A DNA stretch of 64,000 nucleotides from Pecten maximus (taxonomy: Eukaryota), in NCBI RefSeq assembly GCF_902652985.1, contig NC_047015.1, positions 40,672,001-40,736,000 of the forward strand. Direction: 5' to 3'. The notes under the pieces are model-generated. The model was given only the letters and a program-made list of their open reading frames with translations, did no database searches and was not told the DNA's origin. The position numbers and the translations under genes are program-made. Each line of letters starts with the position of its first letter. Positions within the stretch are counted from its first letter, which is position 1. Positions 13,094 through 56,187 of the stretch are shown here, one piece after another.

Positions 13094-16000
13094 GTTAACT
13101 GACTTAATTTGTTTTCGATTTCATCTAATTTCTAAACTGACGATGTGCTGTCTTTACACAAAAAAAACTTTATTATTGACCATGCCGATCGCATATAACC
13201 TGTAGAAGTTGGACTCGTCGACCTACTGGCAATTCAACACCGACCGCTTTCTTCGATCTTTTCTTTTCTTGCAGCGTAACCAGCATGGACAGCTTTCTAA
13301 CTGAGCTGTGTATAATAATCTCATTTTCCCAGTTGATAATTTTCCATCTCTTGATAGAAACATGCCTGCTTCCTCTTCCAACGCTGTCCCAGTTGAATTT
13401 ATGTTCAAGGGATTGTTCCCATTACCGCAATTATCATAACAGACGTCGACTACTGACGGGAAAGTAACCAAAACAAGTTTTCCAGATATGCAGGTTGATG
13501 AAGACTAAAACAATTCCATTTGAAAACAATGTATTTTCTTGTACGGTATAACGTTAAACATTTTCGATGTTTGTTGAAATATTTACTGGTCTCGTTGTGA
13601 TCTTCCTACTTTTCATTTTGAGAATGAAACCTTACCCAGATTAATCTAGATTTGCATGTCGGCGGTTCTTGCTGAATCAGAAGATGCTTATTGTTCCGGA
13701 ACACCTGTTCCTATTCTCCTTGTATTTTGTCCATTTTGTTCATGCAAATCTAGATTATCTTGTTAGTATTTTGCCTTCGTTTTATCAATTTGAGTTAGAA
13801 TTACAACTTTGTTATTATGTCGGTAATATCAGTTGTTTATTTACGCATGCGACAAATTCATTTTCTTAGACCAAGACATGTAATAAGGTATAACATTGTG
13901 TTTTCGACCTGCTTAGCTGACTCAAATTCAATGTAACACAGTTTTTACACAAGTTGTTGATGTACTGCTAACATGGAATGCTGCCAGTCTAAATTTAAAG
14001 AAATCCAACAAAATAATGGATTTTTCATGAGATTGTAAATATTAGCCTAATATATTTAAAGCATTTTCGGCATATACAACATCACATATCTTGTACAAAA
14101 TAAGTCGAGTTTCAGGTTATTCTCAAGGGGGGAATGGAGGGTAGTGTCCGCCCGTCTGTCATGACATGTCGGACCATTTGTACACCATATTAGCATAACA
14201 TCAAGTTCTATACCTGATCATATATATGCTTGTAATCATCGGTCAGTGTTAAAGGTTAAATCTCGCATGTAACTACTTCTGAAGGGAACACAATATCATA
14301 CCTTGAACTCTTAATAGATTTGGTTCATATTGACACCATAGTGTCATAACATCACGGCCTTTACATAGAAGCAGATATTTACTAGTTGTATTTAATACAA
14401 ATCGTCGCGTTTTACTACACATAAAATGCACCAATAGTTACGATACCGATTTCACAGTTCCCCTATGACAAACATTTTCAAAAATCCATATAATCAGAAA
14501 AGTATATTCAGGATTTCATCATCAGCTGGAATGGCGTGATGCATTGTCAGAATGTTTGAGGAACCAGTACACGTAATTACAAATAGCTCTATACACCTTG
14601 TAATTTACTTGTCAATCAAAATCTAAGAAAATATCAACACACAAATGTACATAGCGGAGATCTTCCTCTACTGTTTACTTCTTTTATTTACATATATTTA
14701 TATAAGTAGTCACCATCACTAGCGCATCAAACCCACATCTCGGTACTACAATGTCATAAGATTAAGCTGAATGCAGCTGATTTGTAATGATTGGTTAGCT
14801 TTACTATTTCAGTCATGTACATGTATAATAGTTTTCTTAAACTCGGCATGTAGTACGTTCCATAGGCTGTTCTGATATGCAATGGAGCACCATTAAATGT
14901 TGTCTGTTCGTGATGTTTGAAGTGTTGTAGGATTATTTTGATCGAGTCACGATAGTTAAAATTTGTTTTAGTGTGATAATGTTCTAAAGTAGAAATATGT
15001 GGTAAACTTGTGATATTTTGATAAAACGATTAGAAAATATGGTGTTAAAAATTGCCTAATTACATTTCGATAATCATTTACGTGTAGCGATCTATTTCAC
15101 ATCCATTTAAATGGTTTTGCAACACAAAGAACATTTCAGAAACGATATGGAACGTCAGATTGTCTTTATTCTTAGTGACTAGTTAATGATGTGTAAATAA
15201 TCACCATTAATTAATCATTTTTTATCCAATGGTGATGTTACTTGTTGATGGTATCAGTTGCGTGATTTTATTTGAAAGTTTGAACATAAAAACTGTTTTT
15301 TATATACATGCACTGTAATAAAGGCGCTGTATTGTTACACATCAGACAATGGGCCCAAGGCGACAAGTAAGTACAATGGTGTCAGCTAAGTGCATTTCCC
15401 ACAATCTCTTTGGTGCAGTTGAGCAAAGTAATGACTTAATGTTATTTGCTGTTCCACAGATAAATAAAGGAAGGCATGCCATGCTAACGAACTGACACAA
15501 TACGATTGGTTTCCGTTATAACCGATATTTTTCAAATGTGAACAAATTTAACATGTTAATTGACCTAATGATTTATCTATAAGGAATCGCTAGAAGTCCT
15601 TTGGCGTGTGGGATGTTTGAACATTTACATTATCTTATTGATTTCTTGATAATGAAAAATAGAAACTCGAGCGTATGTTAAGATTATTGTCAATTGTGAT
15701 AAAAATTATATTTATGCTATTTCGATGTTGAGTTCTTCTGGCGCATTTTCAGTCTTAGGTTTTCCATTACTGCCACTAGTTCTTGATTGGTACACCAAAT
15801 GAGATTGGATCAGAAAACATGATGATTTATTATCCAAAATTACCAAAATAATAAGATATCCTCTTTCATCATTTAACATTTGTTTTGGTATATGATTTTA
15901 CTTTGGTCCAAACCAATCTCAAGGATTTCATTTTATCTCTTATTGTCACTGAATAGACCAACACCAACATAAAACTGTATAGTATAGGTTAATACTCATT

Positions 16001-20253: not shown

Positions 20254-20643
20254 TTAAAGTCACAGGATCTCTCACGCCAAAAATGTACACTGTATGACAA
20301 ATTTTCAGTAAAAAATAACTCACAATGTGAATACATGAAATTTAGAAAAGTACCTTGTATATTTTTCTCTGTCATGATCGTAATTAAGGAGATATGTTCC
20401 AGCATCTCATTCTTATCTTACAGATAATAATTACCTGATTTGCAGCATGCAAAGATCGCATACCTCGCGTAACATTCATACATTTATATGAAAATAGGTT
20501 TATCAATAAAACAGATTATGTTTTGTGAGGAAATACTCTAGCTCATATGCCTTTAACAAAAAGCCATACCTTGTCGAGGGACAAGTATATTTAAACGTCA
20601 TATAGGTGGATAATACAATTAAATAATAATGATTATAAAACTG

Positions 20644-21006
20644 CATCATACAGCTGATTCATCCTTATAGGACTCGTCATTTATACTATGGACATCAGCA
20701 TCTACTTCGCCCTTCTAGGACTCGTAAGTGATACTTGGGACATCAAACAGCTGTTTCGTCTTTCTAGGATTCGTCAGTGAAGTTAAGGACACCATACAGC
20801 TGTTTTGTCCTTCAAGGACTTGTCAGTGATGCTAGGGACATAACTCTGCGGTTTGGTTCTTCTTGGTCTCCGTAGTGATGCAAGAACATCATACAGCTGT
20901 TACGTTCTTCTTGGAATCGTCAGTGATGCTAGTGACAAAATACAGCTGTTATGTCCCTCTATGTTCCGTCCGTGATGCTAGGGACACCATACAGCTCTTT
21001 CGTCCT
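20644..21006 (-). ncRNA. Tandem array (~7.5 x 49 bp) of degenerate minimal hammerhead ribozymes
   Basis: Units start at 20644, 20693, 20741, 20790, 20839, 20887, 20936 and 20985. The by-eye + consensus is CATCATACAGCTGTTTCGTCCTTCTAGGACTCGTCAGTGATGCTAGGGA. Its reverse complement, UCCCUAG CAUCA CUGACGA GUCC UAGAA GGAC GAAAC AGCU GUA UGAUG, reads as stem I, CUGANGA, stem II, GAAA, palindromic stem III, GUA cleavage triplet, stem I'. Each individual unit is mutated. Confidence 0.8.
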
Positions 21007-24000
21007 ATTGATAGGAGCGAAACGGATGGATATCCGGTATAGAAGCCAGGGAAATAAAAATAGGCATCAGGAAATGCCCACAAATGGACATGCATTAACC
21101 TCTGATTTTAATTAGTTTAGTACATTGTTGCTGTTAAACTTGGCCCCTTTTACCCTCTTGACTAATATGTGAAAATAAAGCTGGGCTAAAGTCAGACGTC
21201 TACTATAAAGTATTTTCTTTTAGCAGTCGTTGTAAGCTAGTTTATTCTTAGCGAATTGAACACTTAACGAAAAGAAAATACTTTATGCAAAGGTGGAAAC
21301 AAACAAAGCCAGGTGATGTCGTTTATACGTTACGGATTATACTCATTAACGTCCGTTAACATAACGTATCCCTTTCCTGAATAGTGACGATACAGATTTC
21401 AAATCCCGTTCTTCGTACAAATGCAATGCATGTCCTATTAGACCAATATAGAATATTCAAACTCCGTGATTCGTCGTAGTACAAAGGCAATATATGATTA
21501 TTCATAAACTCAGAAGCATAATTGGTTTCCTAACACATCTGGAGATGCTAAATAGTCTGAGTGGGCTATTGAGGGGATATCTCACTTGAGTGAACCAGGT
21601 CTGAAGTAGGACGAGTGTGCCTTGAGCGATGAATACAGACAGTGTGAATGAATCAAAATACAGTTATGTTGTACAAATTAACTTATTACAAGACATTATC
21701 GCAGTCGAATTATTGGATTGTTACCAAAAAGGTACGCCTAAATAATAGAGACAGCTTATACCCAACTCATTGAGGATGAGAGACTGCCATCTTATTCTAT
21801 CAAATGCTAATTGGTTCCTCACAAGTTTATAGCCAGACGATACGATCATTTCTTTCATGTACATGTCACGGTAAATGATGTGTAATTTTAAATGCAATTC
21901 ACTGAAGAATGGTCCTTTGAAACCCGCACCACTTAGCCAGGTAGTTTTCGCATTTTAGACATAGTACTCGGGTTATTTAATCAATAATTGAGCATTTTTC
22001 GTCTCTGATCAATGTCCGTTTTCAATCAGCAATGCATTATTAATAGGATATACTCCCTCCCGGCAGATCCTGGGCGAATGATAAGGAGATGATAAGGAAT
22101 TGTAGCAGTATAGATGTACTAATGGCCAAAGGTCACCTAGAGCAAATGTACTGTGCACATATATAGTTATGTATCTAATCATTTTATATTAATTGTATAT
22201 ACAAAACTTTCCATTTTCAAACAAAAATTTTATACATATAATCACAAAAACATCAGATCTTACAAGATGCGCGTGGTATAACTCTATCATTAGCGATGTA
22301 GCGATGTATCATGAGACATGTAGCGATACATGTGATGTATGCATTCAATGTTAATTTACCCATGGAAACATTGAAAAGAAACCTTATCCATAACTGGAGC
22401 AAAACATCACGTGGAAGAGCCTTATGTTCTCCTTTTCCAGTTTTGCAATTTCATTTGTCACAAACAGTGCACCGCATATTTATTATTTAGTATAGTACAA
22501 TAACGGGTCGAGCTGATGACGTATACTATATTGATGGCCTGTAGCACATGAAGCTGTGAAAAGATTTATTATTCCTTCGAGATATAAACAGATCTGAGAT
22601 ACCATATTTGTGCTTAAAGATTCATCCATGGATTTCGTTTTGTAGCTAAAGATGATTTTAAAGTACAAATAGTCTGCTGTTTCCAGACGGCCATACGAAT
22701 ATATATAATTTGCATGATGACAAGGAAGCCTAGTTTTTAGTTTTCTCCCTGGTGTGTGTAATGTATTTGTCCGATATTTTAACCGACAAATTGCTTCGAA
22801 GAATGTAACAAATTTCGCTATATGGCCTTTCGTTGTTATTCTCCGCTGTATATAAAACATATATTATTTCTTTCGAATGAAGCATGCAGCTGCGATACTG
22901 ATAATGTATTTTGAAAGCATACATAGCTTTTATTAGCGTTGAATAGAACAAAAAGGCACTCAACATATTCTGATATCGAGATATTTATTGACATTAATTT
23001 CTGTGGTTTCTTTTGTCATTTTTCTATTTTAACGATGCCTTCAAGGCGAGGAATACTTAGAGGTGATATCAGCACGAGCTAATCCTACGAAATGTCACAG
23101 CGTTGATACAATAACAGCGTGTTCATGAGGCACAATTGTGTTCTGAATGGCAAAGATTAAGTATAAACAGTAAACAGTCTCGAAAACAGCTGCCGGATCT
23201 TGTCGAGGAGATATTTTGCCGCCACCCCAGTGTTCCCAAACACATCAATCCTGTGCCCGAAGCAGATCAAACATTCGTTATAGAGACAGTTTCCGTTAGC
23301 CTGTTTTCTGGGCTTTATCACTTTAACGGCCTTGGACTTTTTCGATGTTGCCATAATACGAATTAGATCGCATAAAAAATAATTTCTGCAACACGTTTAA
23401 AAGCTGCAGTAAACAGAATTTTATTTCAAATGCCATCTCTCATGATTAAACACATTAAGTTCAATTTGGCTCATAACCATGGTGTCGGCACGCGCGGCAG
23501 GGTCTGAAGTCACACAATGGTTACTGTGTTCAGAAGTCAGCGAACGCACGCTGTGTCGGGTACGGTTATATATCAAGGGTTGTTATGATGACGGTAACAG
23601 GATACATTGATGTATTGTTAACTAAAGGAATACACTTTTTATAATTAAAGTATGTTTTACTGTCCTCTAGGTTTTGAGATAAGTTACGTATAACAACATT
23701 ATCCAATAATTTATGGGACAATCATAACGACACATTAAAAGCAGGATTCGTTTTATGATACTGAATATTAACACCCGCGATTGCTTCCTCCTTCTCCGGA
23801 TTTTTGTTTTATATTCAAGAATTGCAGTTATTGAATAGAATATATTTAAACGATTTAAACTTGACCGTGTCGCCCTGTATAATTATGATAAGATGTTTCC
23901 TGAACAGTCGCACTTCGTTGACCTGCCTGGTAAATCGATTTTCTAATCGTACATCACTTACATAAGAAAATGTTTTGAGCAGTTTTGTCTTCGATTTCAA

Positions 24001-28595: not shown

Positions 28596-29354
28596 TCACA
28601 CACCTATGTGGTACACATGAAGTGTGAACGTTACACGCAAGAAATGCACCAAGTGTGAACCTTCCTGGCAGTGTCCAGCTCCGCTGTCGCCATTACAAGT
28701 TCATAATGCTATAATTTGATTAATGCTCTTTAATGAAAATGACAACAATAGCGTTGTTTCAAGATATAGATATGTACTTTTTGGAATTTTCATCTGATAT
28801 GCATTCTTAGCCCTACAGCAATTGGTTTGCTGATCAGTCAAGTAAGAGTTTGAAAACGATACTCAAAATTATCCTGAATTAACTAAGAATATTGATTTTA
28901 AAATCGAGTTTTTTTTTTGTCGCCTCCTTTAGACCCTGTATATCACTGATGAGTCCTTGGAAGGACGGAACAGCAACATTATATGTGTATGCTATAGTTT
29001 AATTCATTTTGTCTCTACAGTATCTTAACTATCAATTTGCATTGAAATCTATTAATATTAGTCACGTTTCCAATTATTCGAATTAAGTGCTGTAAACTTC
29101 TTTAAGGTTTGATTGACTACGTTACTTTTAAGACAGTATTTTACTGTTTATAGATTAACCCTTGTGAGCAGTCTAACACAAATTACTGTACATTTCACTT
29201 TAATTTACAGTTTTATTTGGGCGGACCCTATGTTGCTGTCTGTTTTATATCACATACAAAATGTATACAAATTCCCTATATATACTTTAGGTAGAAAGCT
29301 ACAATGTACGTTATTTATCGATAATTCAAAACGGAAGTAGTACATTTTATCATA
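28596..29354 (+). repeat. Local segmental duplication, copy A (flanked by 46-bp direct repeat)
   Basis: Highly similar to 32149-32895 along its length. Flanks 28550-28595 and 29355-29400 are the same 46-mer with 2 mismatches. Confidence 0.9.
28941..28993 (+). ncRNA. Degenerate solo hammerhead motif inside the duplicated segment
   Basis: TATCA CTGATGA GTCC TTGGAA GGAC GGAAC AGCA. GAAA has mutated to GGAA. Paralog of the 32491 copy. Confidence 0.65.
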
Positions 29355-32148: not shown

Positions 32149-32895
32149 TCACACACATATGTGGTACACACGAAGTGTGAACGTTACACGCAAGAAATGC
32201 ACCAGGTGTGAACCTTCCTGGCAGTGTCCAGCTCCGCCGTCGCCATTACAAGTTCATAATGCTGTAATTTGATAAATGCTCTTTAATGAAATTGACAACA
32301 ATAGCGTTGTTTCAAGATATAGAATGGACTTTTTGGAATTTTCATCTGATATGTATTCTTAGCTCGACAGCAATTGGTTTGCTGATCAGTCAAGTAAGAG
32401 TTTGAAAAGGATACTCAAAGTTATCATGAATAAACTAAGAATATTGATTTTAAAATCGAGTTTTTTTTGTCGTCTCCTTTAGACCCTTTACATCACTGAT
32501 GAGTCCTGGAAGGACGAAACAGCTACATTATATGTGTATGCTACAGTTTAATTCATTTTGTCTCTACAGTATCTAACTATCAATTTGCATTGCAATCTAT
32601 TAATATTAGTCACGTTTCCAATTATTCAAATTAAGTGCTGTAAACTTCTTTAAGGTTTGGTGGACTACGTTACTTTTAAGACAGTATTTTACTGTCTATA
32701 GATTAACCCTTGTGAGCAGTCTAACACAAATTACTGTACATTTCACTTTAATTTGCAGTTTTATTTGGGCGGAGCCCTATGTTGCTGTCTGGTTTTATAT
32801 CACATATACAAATTCCCTATATATACTTTAGGTAACCAGATACAATGTACGTTATTTATCGATAATTTAAAACGGAAGTAGTAAATTTTAGCATA
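32149..32895 (+). repeat. Local segmental duplication, copy B (probable donor)
   Basis: Colinear match to 28596-29354. It lacks the 46-bp flanking repeat. Confidence 0.9.
32491..32542 (+). ncRNA. Solo hammerhead ribozyme motif (same family as the array); intact core and stem II, altered stem III and stem I'
   Basis: CATCA CTGATGA GTCC TGGAA GGAC GAAAC AGCT [ACATTATATGT] GTA TGCT. The CUGAUGA, stem II and GAAAC elements are perfect, with 11 extra nt before GUA. Confidence 0.75.
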
Positions 32896-54015: not shown

Positions 54016-54967
54016 AGTAAAGATATGAAAACAAACTTTAAGACATGGAAAGACGAAATACCAAACTTTAAGGAAAGGAAAAACACCAAAACTAACTCTG
54101 AGGAAAGGAAAGACACAAAAGCAAACTATTAGGAAAAGTTGACTTCGGGCTATGTATTGACGTTTCCGTCTTTTGACGTCAACTAAATAATGATAATGTA
54201 TATCTGAACTGATTCAGATGAAATGGTTCAGATGTTTCCAAGTTCTGACACAAGTCTTTAAATACAAAATATTCTGCAATGGGAAGTCATGTCAAGCTAC
54301 TTATGTCGAAACAACACACTTTCTACCTGGTTCAAATACAAATGTATATTAAATATATCAAATGAGTTTCAAGATAGCTAGATACAAATCCAGTCTTGAT
54401 AGGAAGCTTTATTTTTTACCAACTGTATTACGGCCGTGCCTTTTATGCGTACTAACAGATGTTTCACCAAATAATTAGCCAATGATCCTCGTAAAACACC
54501 AGTTAAGCGCCTGTGGCGAAAGACTCCCTCTCTAATTGTACACAGGTCATATGGGATCAGTTTGCCGAGCTTTAATTGACGATATCTCTCATACAGTGTT
54601 CCACGCCGACGCTATATGACCGTTTTGGCCTTCAATATGTTCAAAACATGTGTTTATTTAATTCTAAACATTCTCACAAGACAATGAGCGATTGGTATTT
54701 GATTCAAGACGAGTTGGTCAATAGGTGCAAGTTATTCCAATAATGTTAATGAAGACCTTCTTATATTCAGTGTGTTTATCACGAGTTTAATTGTGTGTAC
54801 GTCCGCAAACGTCAGTTGTCGCTGCCGCTAACATGCACGAGAAATGCATGAGTTATTATTCCAAAGCATGGTTAGTTTCAAACTGATTTTATTAAAAACA
54901 CAAAACCAAATACCAATCGTATAATAAGCTTCAAATCTGTACGTATGATGACCTCAGATGAGTTCAG

Positions 54968-55012
54968 GTCCTTATCGTCACTGACAAGTCCCAGAAGGAC
55001 AACACAGCTGTG
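54968..55012 (+). ncRNA. Degenerate solo hammerhead-family unit
   Basis: GTCCTTATCGTCACTGACAAGTCCCAGAAGGACAACACAGCTGTG aligns ungapped to the array consensus at 37 of 45 positions, including the linker. The core is mutated (CTGACAA; GAAA lost). Confidence 0.6.
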
Positions 55013-56187
55013 TTTTATTCTTCATTACTTTACTGTATCTTATTCTCGATTGGTTTTAAAGGTCCTAATATCTTGTGTCTTTTATACAATTATTTGATAA
55101 TTAGAAATGGAGCGTGCTATATAATCGCCCTATCAATGCTGTAGATAGGTAATATTACTGTAAACGAAGACTGTTTTCTCGTGTCGGTTAACTATCCTGT
55201 CAGACGTGCTACATTTGTATCTTTAAAGACGCAGAGTTGACAAGGCTTTCACGTACACCGAGATGTGATGCCAAATAACCCAATACCTGGTAACAACGCC
55301 AGTGCGAACAGCTGAGGGCTATGGAATTAATTTCTCGCATGATTTCTTGTAAACATGTTCAATTCCCCATCAGTGTAGTCTTATGCCAAGTTAAAAACAT
55401 TTAACGCCAAAACTTCGTTTTATAAAGAAACAACCGGTTCTTATTAGCCACGTTTGAACTTAATTAAAAAGCTAATATTCGAATTCGTGCTTCCATGTCT
55501 TTTTGTTGAAACGCGTTCGTGTGGACAGATAATAATCAGCTTAGACTTTAGGGGTGTTGCTTGAAGTCAAATTCAACGGACTGTCCGATAAGCATGGTGT
55601 GCACTACAGTCAAATTCATTCTGCAGCCAAAATCTCTGAACAGGCGATAATTCTGATCTGGAGCTTTATATATACAGACTTCCTAGCATATTACATTTGA
55701 CTTGGCAAGTGTGTCGATAAAACAGTAGACAAATACTCTTTCGAAACACCTGGTCTTATTATCGACTATTTTTCATTGTTCATATTCTTTCCGATATTTT
55801 ATGCAGTTTGAGATATAATTGTGATTTGATGTGCACGTTGGTATTCTCTTTTGATAGTTTCCTGTGTTGTTTAGCACAATACACTGACACCTGTTCTTGG
55901 GTGAGTAAAGGGGATACATACCAACCCTATAGTGACACCGATCCGAAGGAGGTGAAGGTAACGTTCGTGTTTAACTACACACTGGGAAGCAACCCTTAAA
56001 TAAGGTTTCATTTCAACAGAATAAAAAAAGGTTGAATGAAATAATATTAATCGACATTTCATAAACATAAAGGAGTCTTGTTATTAAGGACTCTTAAATG
56101 GAAAAGTAGGTAAACTATCCCTTTTCTGAAACCCTCAAGGCAATACGATTATTTTTAATAATTACAAAGATATATCTTTTTATTTTG

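Follow-up and report, generated by a model that had tools for sequence, protein, structure and literature searches.

Newt satellite 2, Schistosoma Sm-alpha and Dolichopoda pDo500 are the classical hammerhead satellites, which occur both dispersed and in tandem, and one of which (Sm-alpha) is SINE-like. Satellites of this kind are tandem DNA repeats whose transcripts contain a type I hammerhead (PMC7761336; PMC2837043), and they share with the non-LTR retrozymes units of 170-500 nt and the need for two copies to form helix III (PMC4209133; PMC7229834; PMC7761336). Metazoan non-LTR retrozymes, whose units measure ~170-400 nt, accumulate as circular RNAs (Cervera and de la Pena 2020, PMC7229834). 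Li, Clavereau and Pollet (2026 preprint, doi 10.64898/2026.07.22.740005) give non-LTR retrozyme consensus lengths of 51-972 bp, based on Tandem Repeats Finder and a hammerhead descriptor; the species surveyed are 31 vertebrates, three insects and one coral, with no mollusc among them, and retrozymes are connected there both with the pseudo-LTRs of Penelope and with unequal crossover as a source of local amplification. The minimal hammerheads of Penelope-like elements belong to type I and have a helix III of 1-2 bp and a palindromic loop, predicted to act as dimers (Cervera and de la Pena 2014, PMC4209133), and for the most part occur dispersed and one by one, as leftovers of truncated elements (PMC4209133). 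Bivalves, finally, harbour the CvA/pearl elements, which are short and non-autonomous, with conserved arms around a central repeat that is variable in copy number, and which can seed satellites (PMC5874043).

The 49-bp family that we describe here in the scallop Pecten maximus is a compact variant of these known ribozyme satellites. Like the hammerhead satellites, it is tandemly arranged, carries a type I motif and has a weak helix III that is stable only when two copies pair. In newt satellite 2, Sm-alpha and pDo500 (monomers of ~330-500 bp), as in the described retrozymes, the repeat runs to a few hundred bases and the ribozyme takes up little of it, whereas the 49-bp scallop repeat is the ribozyme alone. 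The scallop array is, in addition, nested in a larger element, most copies of which are not in tandem, and this sets it apart from the classical satellites. With metazoan non-LTR retrozymes the family has in common that it consists of non-coding tandem repeats with a type I hammerhead each, that it occurs in a mollusc (as in Mytilus) alongside Penelope-like elements, and that its sequence occurs in RNA-seq contigs, retrozymes being expressed as RNA (PMC7229834, PMC7761336). However, its 49-nt unit lies below their ~170-400 nt, and most of the arrays checked are fixed within a parent element and show satellite-type dynamics, retrozyme monomer size being better matched by the ~300-bp parent element itself. 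The ~51-bp retrozyme families, for which the preprint gives consensus lengths, are close to the scallop unit in size and may or may not consist of a hammerhead only. Penelope-like motifs usually have a helix II of 6-8 bp with a bulge and an open, poorly defined loop 1, with a position in a pseudo-LTR beside a reverse transcriptase ORF (PMC4209133); in contrast, the scallop hammerhead has a helix II of 4 bp and a loop 1 closed by the tandem context, and no reverse transcriptase ORF was present within 1.5 kb of it at any of 80 loci. Compared by description only, the scallop parent element resembles CvA/pearl elements in having arms and a variable repeat core, but the cores of the latter consist of ~156-bp units without a ribozyme, and these elements are regarded as DNA-transposon-like (PMC5874043).

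In the window (the whole stretch that was analysed, 64,000 nucleotides at positions 40,672,001 to 40,736,000 of contig NC_047015.1), the family is represented by a tandem array at 20644-21006, for which Tandem Repeats Finder gives a period of 49, 7.4 copies, 72% matches and a score of 325. An initial reading based on the letters alone (hereafter the sequence-only reading) had proposed ~7.5 head-to-tail units of 48-49 bp, with a monomer that is essentially only a hammerhead, and both points hold. The Tandem Repeats Finder consensus, once reverse-complemented, is the very hammerhead sequence of that reading, UCCCUAG-CAUCA-CUGACGA-GUCC-UAGAA-GGAC-GAAAC-AGCU-GUA-UGAUG, and on the minus strand it displays, as had been claimed, every conserved hammerhead nucleotide in the right order and strands that pair as stem I (5 bp) and stem II (4 bp), while helix III is limited to 2 bp with the palindrome AGCU as its cap. 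The hammerhead motif is far above chance in the window, where the pattern CTGANGA-N8-20-GAAACAGCTGTH matches once (vs 0.00 expected) and GAAACAGCTGTA, with at most one mismatch, six times (vs 0.35 expected).

Eight units can be recognised at this locus (Table 1), including an extra, internally deleted one at the upstream end. The sequence-only reading had considered the copies decayed, and indeed none of the eight keeps the full core, each of them missing at least one essential nucleotide or pair. It had also singled out unit 6 as the closest to a functional ribozyme, which is correct: both core boxes are intact and stem II is damaged (AUCC/AGAC), the 10.1-11.1 pair and one further stem II pair being broken. 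No Rfam match was found in the window at gathering score. For the hammerhead models of Rfam clan CL00010 (RF00163 for type I, RF00008 for type III), the best sub-threshold match is to Hammerhead_3 at 20748-20802 (29.8 bits, E 4.5e-4, threshold 48.5), which covers two units because neighbouring CAGCUG palindromes pair as a long helix III, and Hammerhead_1 reaches 14.1 bits (threshold 34) at 20648-20686 in unit 8. Judging from its sequence, the window copy is therefore an inactive fossil, predicted to be unable to self-cleave because an essential nucleotide or pair is gone in every unit, and it should be of no consequence for the window itself.

Table 1. Hammerhead array, parent-element arms and further parent-element copies in the window
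Feature	Position	Strand	Evidence
Parent-element 5' arm remnant, directly upstream of unit 1	21035..21077	-	nhmmer profile match
Unit 1, degenerate; CUGANGA box and 5' half of stem II deleted, remainder ...AGGACGAAAGAGCUGUAUGGUG	20985..21034	-	69% identity to consensus, no core boxes
Unit 2, dead; CUGANGA -> CGGACGG, GAAA -> AUAA	20936..20984	-	80% identity to consensus
Unit 3, CUGACGA intact; GAAA -> GUAA, stem II weakened (UUCC/GAAC)	20887..20935	-	90% identity
Unit 4, 48 bp, heavy decay, without core boxes	20839..20886	-	73% identity
Unit 5, best-kept stems; core G8>A (CUGACAA) and G12>A (AAAAC)	20790..20838	-	92% identity
Unit 6, nearest functional; CUGACGA and GAAAC intact, cleavage triplet GUU	20741..20789	-	Exact pattern match
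Unit 7, 48 bp; G5>U (CUUACGA), helix III region damaged	20693..20740	-	82% identity
Unit 8, last; C3>A and A14>U, ends ...GUAUGAUG, joined directly to 3' arm	20644..20692	-	Unit comparison, Hammerhead_1 14.1 bits
Parent-element 3' arm, decayed; starts CAGUUUUAUAAUC, far end approximate	20560..20643	-	Junction, profile and by-eye comparison with other 3' arms
Parent-element copy, single hammerhead	28905..29058	+	nhmmer, model positions 101-253, E 6.1e-18
Parent-element copy, single hammerhead	32456..32606	+	nhmmer, model positions 100-253, E 6e-25
Parent-element copy, single hammerhead and 3' arm	54961..55090	+	nhmmer, model positions 133-274, E 1.1e-20

In the P. maximus genome, the 42-nt hammerhead has 6,137 matches with at most three mismatches (vs 0 for controls), which is a lower bound for near-consensus units, and the unit-unit junction has 13,422 (vs 100 for controls). 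Judged from the junction places listed, there are ~500 arrays, which range from 2 to >130 units, the longest one seen being ~6.5 kb. Arrays that match the one in the window at 75-83% identity are present on most of the 19 chromosome-scale scaffolds; many of them are younger and have consensus units that are perfect hammerheads, as illustrated by an array of 22 units with 94% matches (L010), where the full core is intact in 68% of the units. This conserved core (C3 U4 G5 A6 N7 G8 A9, G12 A13 A14, A15.1-U16.1, H17) is present in both the family and the array consensus. Younger intact arrays of variable copy number, which the sequence-only reading had called for, thus exist genome-wide, but their phase relative to the flanking arms, expected to vary, is fixed. 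The units are arranged head-to-tail, with a type I hammerhead each and no coding capacity, which is how retrozymes are recognised, and the variable copy number, local homogenisation and higher-order repeats are those of minisatellite or satellite DNA. Neither a 49-bp satellite nor a ribozyme satellite is mentioned in the papers on scallop repeats that were consulted.

Array ends, when printed, reveal that the last unit is followed by conserved sequence. The junction between the last unit and this 3' arm (ACAGCTGTATGATG followed directly by CAG) has 982 matches in the genome (vs 1 for the control), and 30 loci sampled among them are split roughly in half between those with a single hammerhead and those with arrays of 2 to >31 units. 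Alignment of the single-hammerhead copies delineates a dispersed, non-coding parent element of ~290-350 bp, in which a 5' arm of ~140 bp (extended by ~60 bp in a number of copies) is followed by the ribozyme unit of 49 bp and this by a 3' arm of 84 bp, with copies sharing 70-84% identity. A profile built from 12 full copies matches both arms flanking arrays, for example those at L018, L021, L030, L031, L034, L039 and in the window, where the match spans 21077-20940 on the minus strand (model positions 59-185, E 1.3e-6) and continues into the 3' arm, to model position 198, reaching 20635. The junction between the last window unit and its arm (UCAGCUGUAUGAUG followed by CAG) is at most one mismatch away from the genome-wide pattern. 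Most of the arrays checked, including that of the window, therefore fill the ribozyme slot of an older parent element. Recognisable arms are lacking for both arrays on scaffold 6 (C6), at the 3' ends of the C15 array and of L002, and on the 5' side of L010, and these arrays may have lost their arms or spread in another way. Additional copies flanking the sampled loci suggest thousands to tens of thousands of parent elements, the number genome-wide being probably in the thousands. For annotation purposes, the arrays, these elements and the relatives found under at least two other organism labels make up one family. An apparent coincidence between array ends and the ribozyme cleavage site was discarded as a phase artefact of the model, the printed junctions showing conserved arms instead. 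Array-bearing elements could not be recognised as a subfamily of their own, no arm position being diagnostic (best Fisher p ~0.004, uncorrected, for 7-8 array-bearing vs 33-34 single-hammerhead elements).

The parent element is presumably mobile as a retroelement, via a helper reverse transcriptase. The genome contains >150 matches to GIY-YIG endonuclease, several of them in ORFs of 707-929 aa that are free of interruptions and turn up repeatedly with the same scores (L081-L083), which suggests that P. maximus has recently active Penelope-like families. Three sampled intact Penelope elements carry neither the hammerhead nor the parent element, and full-length parent copies have no SINE-type head (tRNA, 5S or 7SL; Rfam, E up to 0.05). 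The idea that the 84-nt 3' arm might duplicate the 5' end of the element in the manner of a Penelope tail, which would give circularly permuted copies, was rejected as unsupported, the similarity to the extended 5' region being no better than that in 181 of 1,000 shuffles and a tandem dimer occurring only once in 22 full copies. As for the architecture of individual copies, this single dimer (L060:1325-1670, on G000:C16 near 15057500) joins two whole elements and is retrozyme-like, with hammerheads ~300 bp apart. In another (L053, on G000:C5 near 12115900), the first ~48 bp of the 5' arm are repeated three to four times in tandem ~200 bp upstream of the element, and L064 has an internal duplication resembling this one, which suggests that further modules of the parent element can amplify too.

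With a probability of about 0.65, we consider the window array to be a decayed member of a minisatellite whose module is a hammerhead, formed by DNA-level expansion of an element-borne ribozyme, the intact copies of which should cleave as RNA. The starting point would be an element of ~290-350 bp carrying one minimal type I hammerhead between a 5' arm of ~140-200 bp and a 3' arm of ~84 bp. A 49-bp segment of it, made up of the complete ribozyme and of the 7 nt by which stem I is closed between adjacent copies, would have become tandemly duplicated and, in numerous parent-element copies, would then have expanded to between 2 and >130 units. These arrays would grow, shrink and be homogenised by unequal exchange or replication slippage, independently of ribozyme activity. 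At the RNA level, (i) the CAGCUG palindromes of adjacent intact units would pair into a 7-bp helix III, (ii) this helix, stem I (5 bp, 7-nt loop) and stem II (4 bp, 5-nt loop) would together form a complete three-way-junction hammerhead and (iii) the resulting two-unit hammerhead should cut after each GUA, freeing 49-nt monomers. The data document the anatomy of the family, its placement inside the parent element, the DNA-level behaviour of the arrays and their occurrence in RNA-seq contigs; self-cleavage, the origin of the first duplication and the movement of the parent element are what we infer. All arrays have a common unit length and a common junction, which suggests a single founding duplication that was spread by transposition, although no subfamily signal among array-bearing elements bears this out. 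Such a family would illustrate how the ribozyme module of a mobile element becomes an ordinary satellite.

The internal structure of the arrays is what speaks most directly about their dynamics, and growth, shrinkage and homogenisation all look DNA-level. Two arrays on scaffold 6 lie in a recent segmental duplication (L084 and L085, G000:C6:21849000-21868999, ~13.5 kb apart) with 600-bp flanks that are 98.3-98.8% identical, yet they comprise 71 vs 22 units, and alignment of the array interiors gives only ~91%. In many arrays, the identity of two units declines with the distance between them, while others show identity peaks at lags of 6, 9, 10 and 12, which are higher-order repeats. Among 19 independent arrays, ten have a core substitution in their consensus, at G12 in seven cases (six of these G12>A), and seven of the ten core-mutant arrays have no intact unit but nevertheless reach 8-34 copies; G12, within a CpG, is the most mutable position of the unit. 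Higher-order repeats, distance decay, dead variants shared by a whole array and the 71 vs 22 units are the reasons for placing turnover at the level of DNA. Edge units are not older than inner ones, the difference being negligible (0.082 vs 0.074).

These observations bear on the proposal of the sequence-only reading that the array is an ultra-minimal retrozyme, whose 49-nt monomers would circularise and be copied by a helper reverse transcriptase into a concatemer that integrates elsewhere. Several of its components stand, namely the hammerhead-only monomer, the younger intact arrays, the score of intact units with Hammerhead_1 and the array sequence in RNA-seq contigs; the part that does not is the free-standing spread of a 49-nt unit. 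A unit that is exactly one hammerhead, whose neighbours complete a canonical fold, is what such a retrozyme would look like, and the arrays are many and dispersed in a genome rich in Penelope-like ORFs for reverse transcriptase-endonuclease that are intact and up to 929 aa long. Arrays are also more alike internally than between each other (mostly 0.85-0.95 vs 0.83), as expected from one founding circle, and a few have no recognisable arms. However, random integration of cDNA concatemers does not produce a shared slot with both arms, and rather than having reached new loci with independent flanks, most of the arrays checked are confined to a constant position between the arms of a single parent element. 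Neither higher-order repeats nor distance decay are expected from rolling-circle copies of a single 49-nt circle, and the amplification to 8-34 copies of wholly G12-mutant, presumably inactive arrays is equally at odds with it. The armless scaffold 6 arrays are the segmental-duplication pair whose unit numbers changed at the DNA level. An element with a single hammerhead, moreover, cannot free a 49-nt monomer, so that this route could not start an array. We therefore regard this scenario as very improbable, and the alternative that the sequence-only reading had itself put forward, DNA-level amplification of one element-borne hammerhead, as a better fit.

Arrays could instead be born while the parent element retrotransposes, if the reverse transcriptase copied the 3' fragment up to the ribozyme-cut 5' end, jumped between cleaved 49-nt pieces (or slipped) and finished on the 5' fragment, so that each insertion would arrive with a new number of units between its arms, DNA turnover coming later. 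Such a scheme would account for arrays between arms, for the exact unit length and single junction, and for the presence of arrays in roughly half of the sampled elements, and it has a precedent in a Penelope reverse transcriptase for which both template jumping and internal initiation have been reported (PMC11167929). Pooled cleaved RNAs should, however, give mixed arrays, while the variants observed are private and array-wide. Array-bearing and single-hammerhead elements are alike in the divergence of their arms (75%), and the ~20-25% that separates arms from the family consensus, a figure inflated by subfamily differences, compared with the 4-14% between units and their own array consensus, favours turnover after insertion. 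The absence of reverse transcriptase ORFs at the 80 loci and of the parent element from the three Penelope elements also counts against birth during retrotransposition, which we find unlikely, and DNA-level expansion within elements already in place remains our preferred reading.

Are intact copies ribozymes? Five intact L010 units score 35.2-36.5 bits with Hammerhead_1 (RF00163), above the threshold of 34, and in a two-unit register intact units of this array reach 43.5-46.6 bits with Hammerhead_3 (RF00008), below its threshold of 48.5. Checking the motif against both models, as the sequence-only reading had advised, thus favours the hammerhead assignment for intact units with Hammerhead_1, while the window copy fails with both. 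Neighbouring intact units are predicted to pair into a type III hammerhead with a helix III of 7 bp, the tandem arrangement itself providing helix III and closing loop 1. The two-unit hammerhead fold has an energy of -16.5 kcal/mol, vs -19.8 for the minimum-free-energy fold, in which the linker pairs with the 3' strand of stem II and stems I and II are not formed. This competition of the linker for stem II suggests that activity may be modest. On sequence and modelled folding, intact tandem units are nonetheless credible as ribozymes.

A plain minisatellite with no RNA activity, in which the hammerhead would be an inheritance too minimal to cleave in cells and the 49-bp period incidental, has to be weighed against this. 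The minimal hammerheads of the Penelope type cleave poorly in vitro, even as dimers (PMC4209133), the minimum-free-energy fold differs from the hammerhead fold, and roughly half of the arrays are catalytically dead in consensus. There is, in addition, little compensatory covariation in the stems of single-hammerhead copies, and a highly expressed RNA contig of 2,130 nt (depth 448) retains ~4 uncut, diverged units. But no core nucleotide is missing from the family consensus, which also retains the two stems and the palindrome, a curated Rfam threshold is passed by intact units, and the tandem geometry corresponds to that of natural type III hammerheads with closed loops 1 and 2, unlike the open minimal motifs of Penelope. 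The hammerhead is, furthermore, the best-conserved 49-nt stretch of the parent element (0.91 in the core vs 0.80-0.82 in the arms, in 23 single-hammerhead elements drawn blind to the hammerhead). A wholly inert repeat thus appears quite unlikely, and we retain the reading in which intact units of a DNA-level minisatellite should cleave as RNA.

The contig just mentioned comes from a survey of 24 public runs, all of which are in the form of assembled contigs in which RNA ends cannot be seen. One RNA-seq library yielded 217 contigs on the array, this one among them, to which DNA carry-over may have contributed. Arrays also occur under two further organism labels, and at least one of these shows both arm junctions. 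Were transcribed intact arrays chopped into 49-nt RNAs, an RtcB-type ligase might close them into circles that a Penelope reverse transcriptase would occasionally copy back, starting or lengthening arrays, a scenario that we find doubtful. If true, the 49-nt circles would be the smallest natural ribozyme-bearing RNA unit known. The scallop family is in any case a natural test case for the minimum size of a self-cleaving, possibly circularising, RNA unit. In the same survey, a short segment beside the element at L018 (L018:1300-1351) has a summed depth of up to ~21,000 in the RNA-type runs of one organism (A) and of zero in two others (B and C); a further repeat, it is either abundant or expressed in the species of organism A.

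Several other repeats were noticed near members of the family. At G000:C1:17028600-17033304, the distances between recurring exact unit-unit junctions do not fit multiples of 49 (264, 332, 380, 239, 358, 550, 380, 620, 380, 598...), and this may be a tandem repeat of larger period with at least two hammerheads per unit, which would be the best candidate of retrozyme size. The paired arrays on scaffold 6 end mid-unit beside a CCTAAAC-like simple repeat, and between them lies a 32-bp tandem repeat of 24 copies with 94% matches (positions 14176-14953 of the joined 20-kb sequence). Upstream of the young L010 hammerhead array, in place of the 5' arm, there is an array with a 48-bp period and a palindromic unit (GTGATATCACCTATTCGAATAG...; L010:341-1001, that is, G000:C1:29053135-29053795), which may be an insertion. 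At L073:2321-2402, ~600 bp from a copy of the parent element, lies a palindromic hairpin that matches mir-33 on either strand with scores of 36.7 and 34.2 bits, below the threshold of 50. Finally, a different tandem repeat (L011/L012/L020, G000:C15:888063-889150) is found upstream of the C15 array, which is the largest hammerhead array sampled, and its short units (...SPYLRTSPSDITLP...), with a reported period of 49 bp, are open in all three phases.
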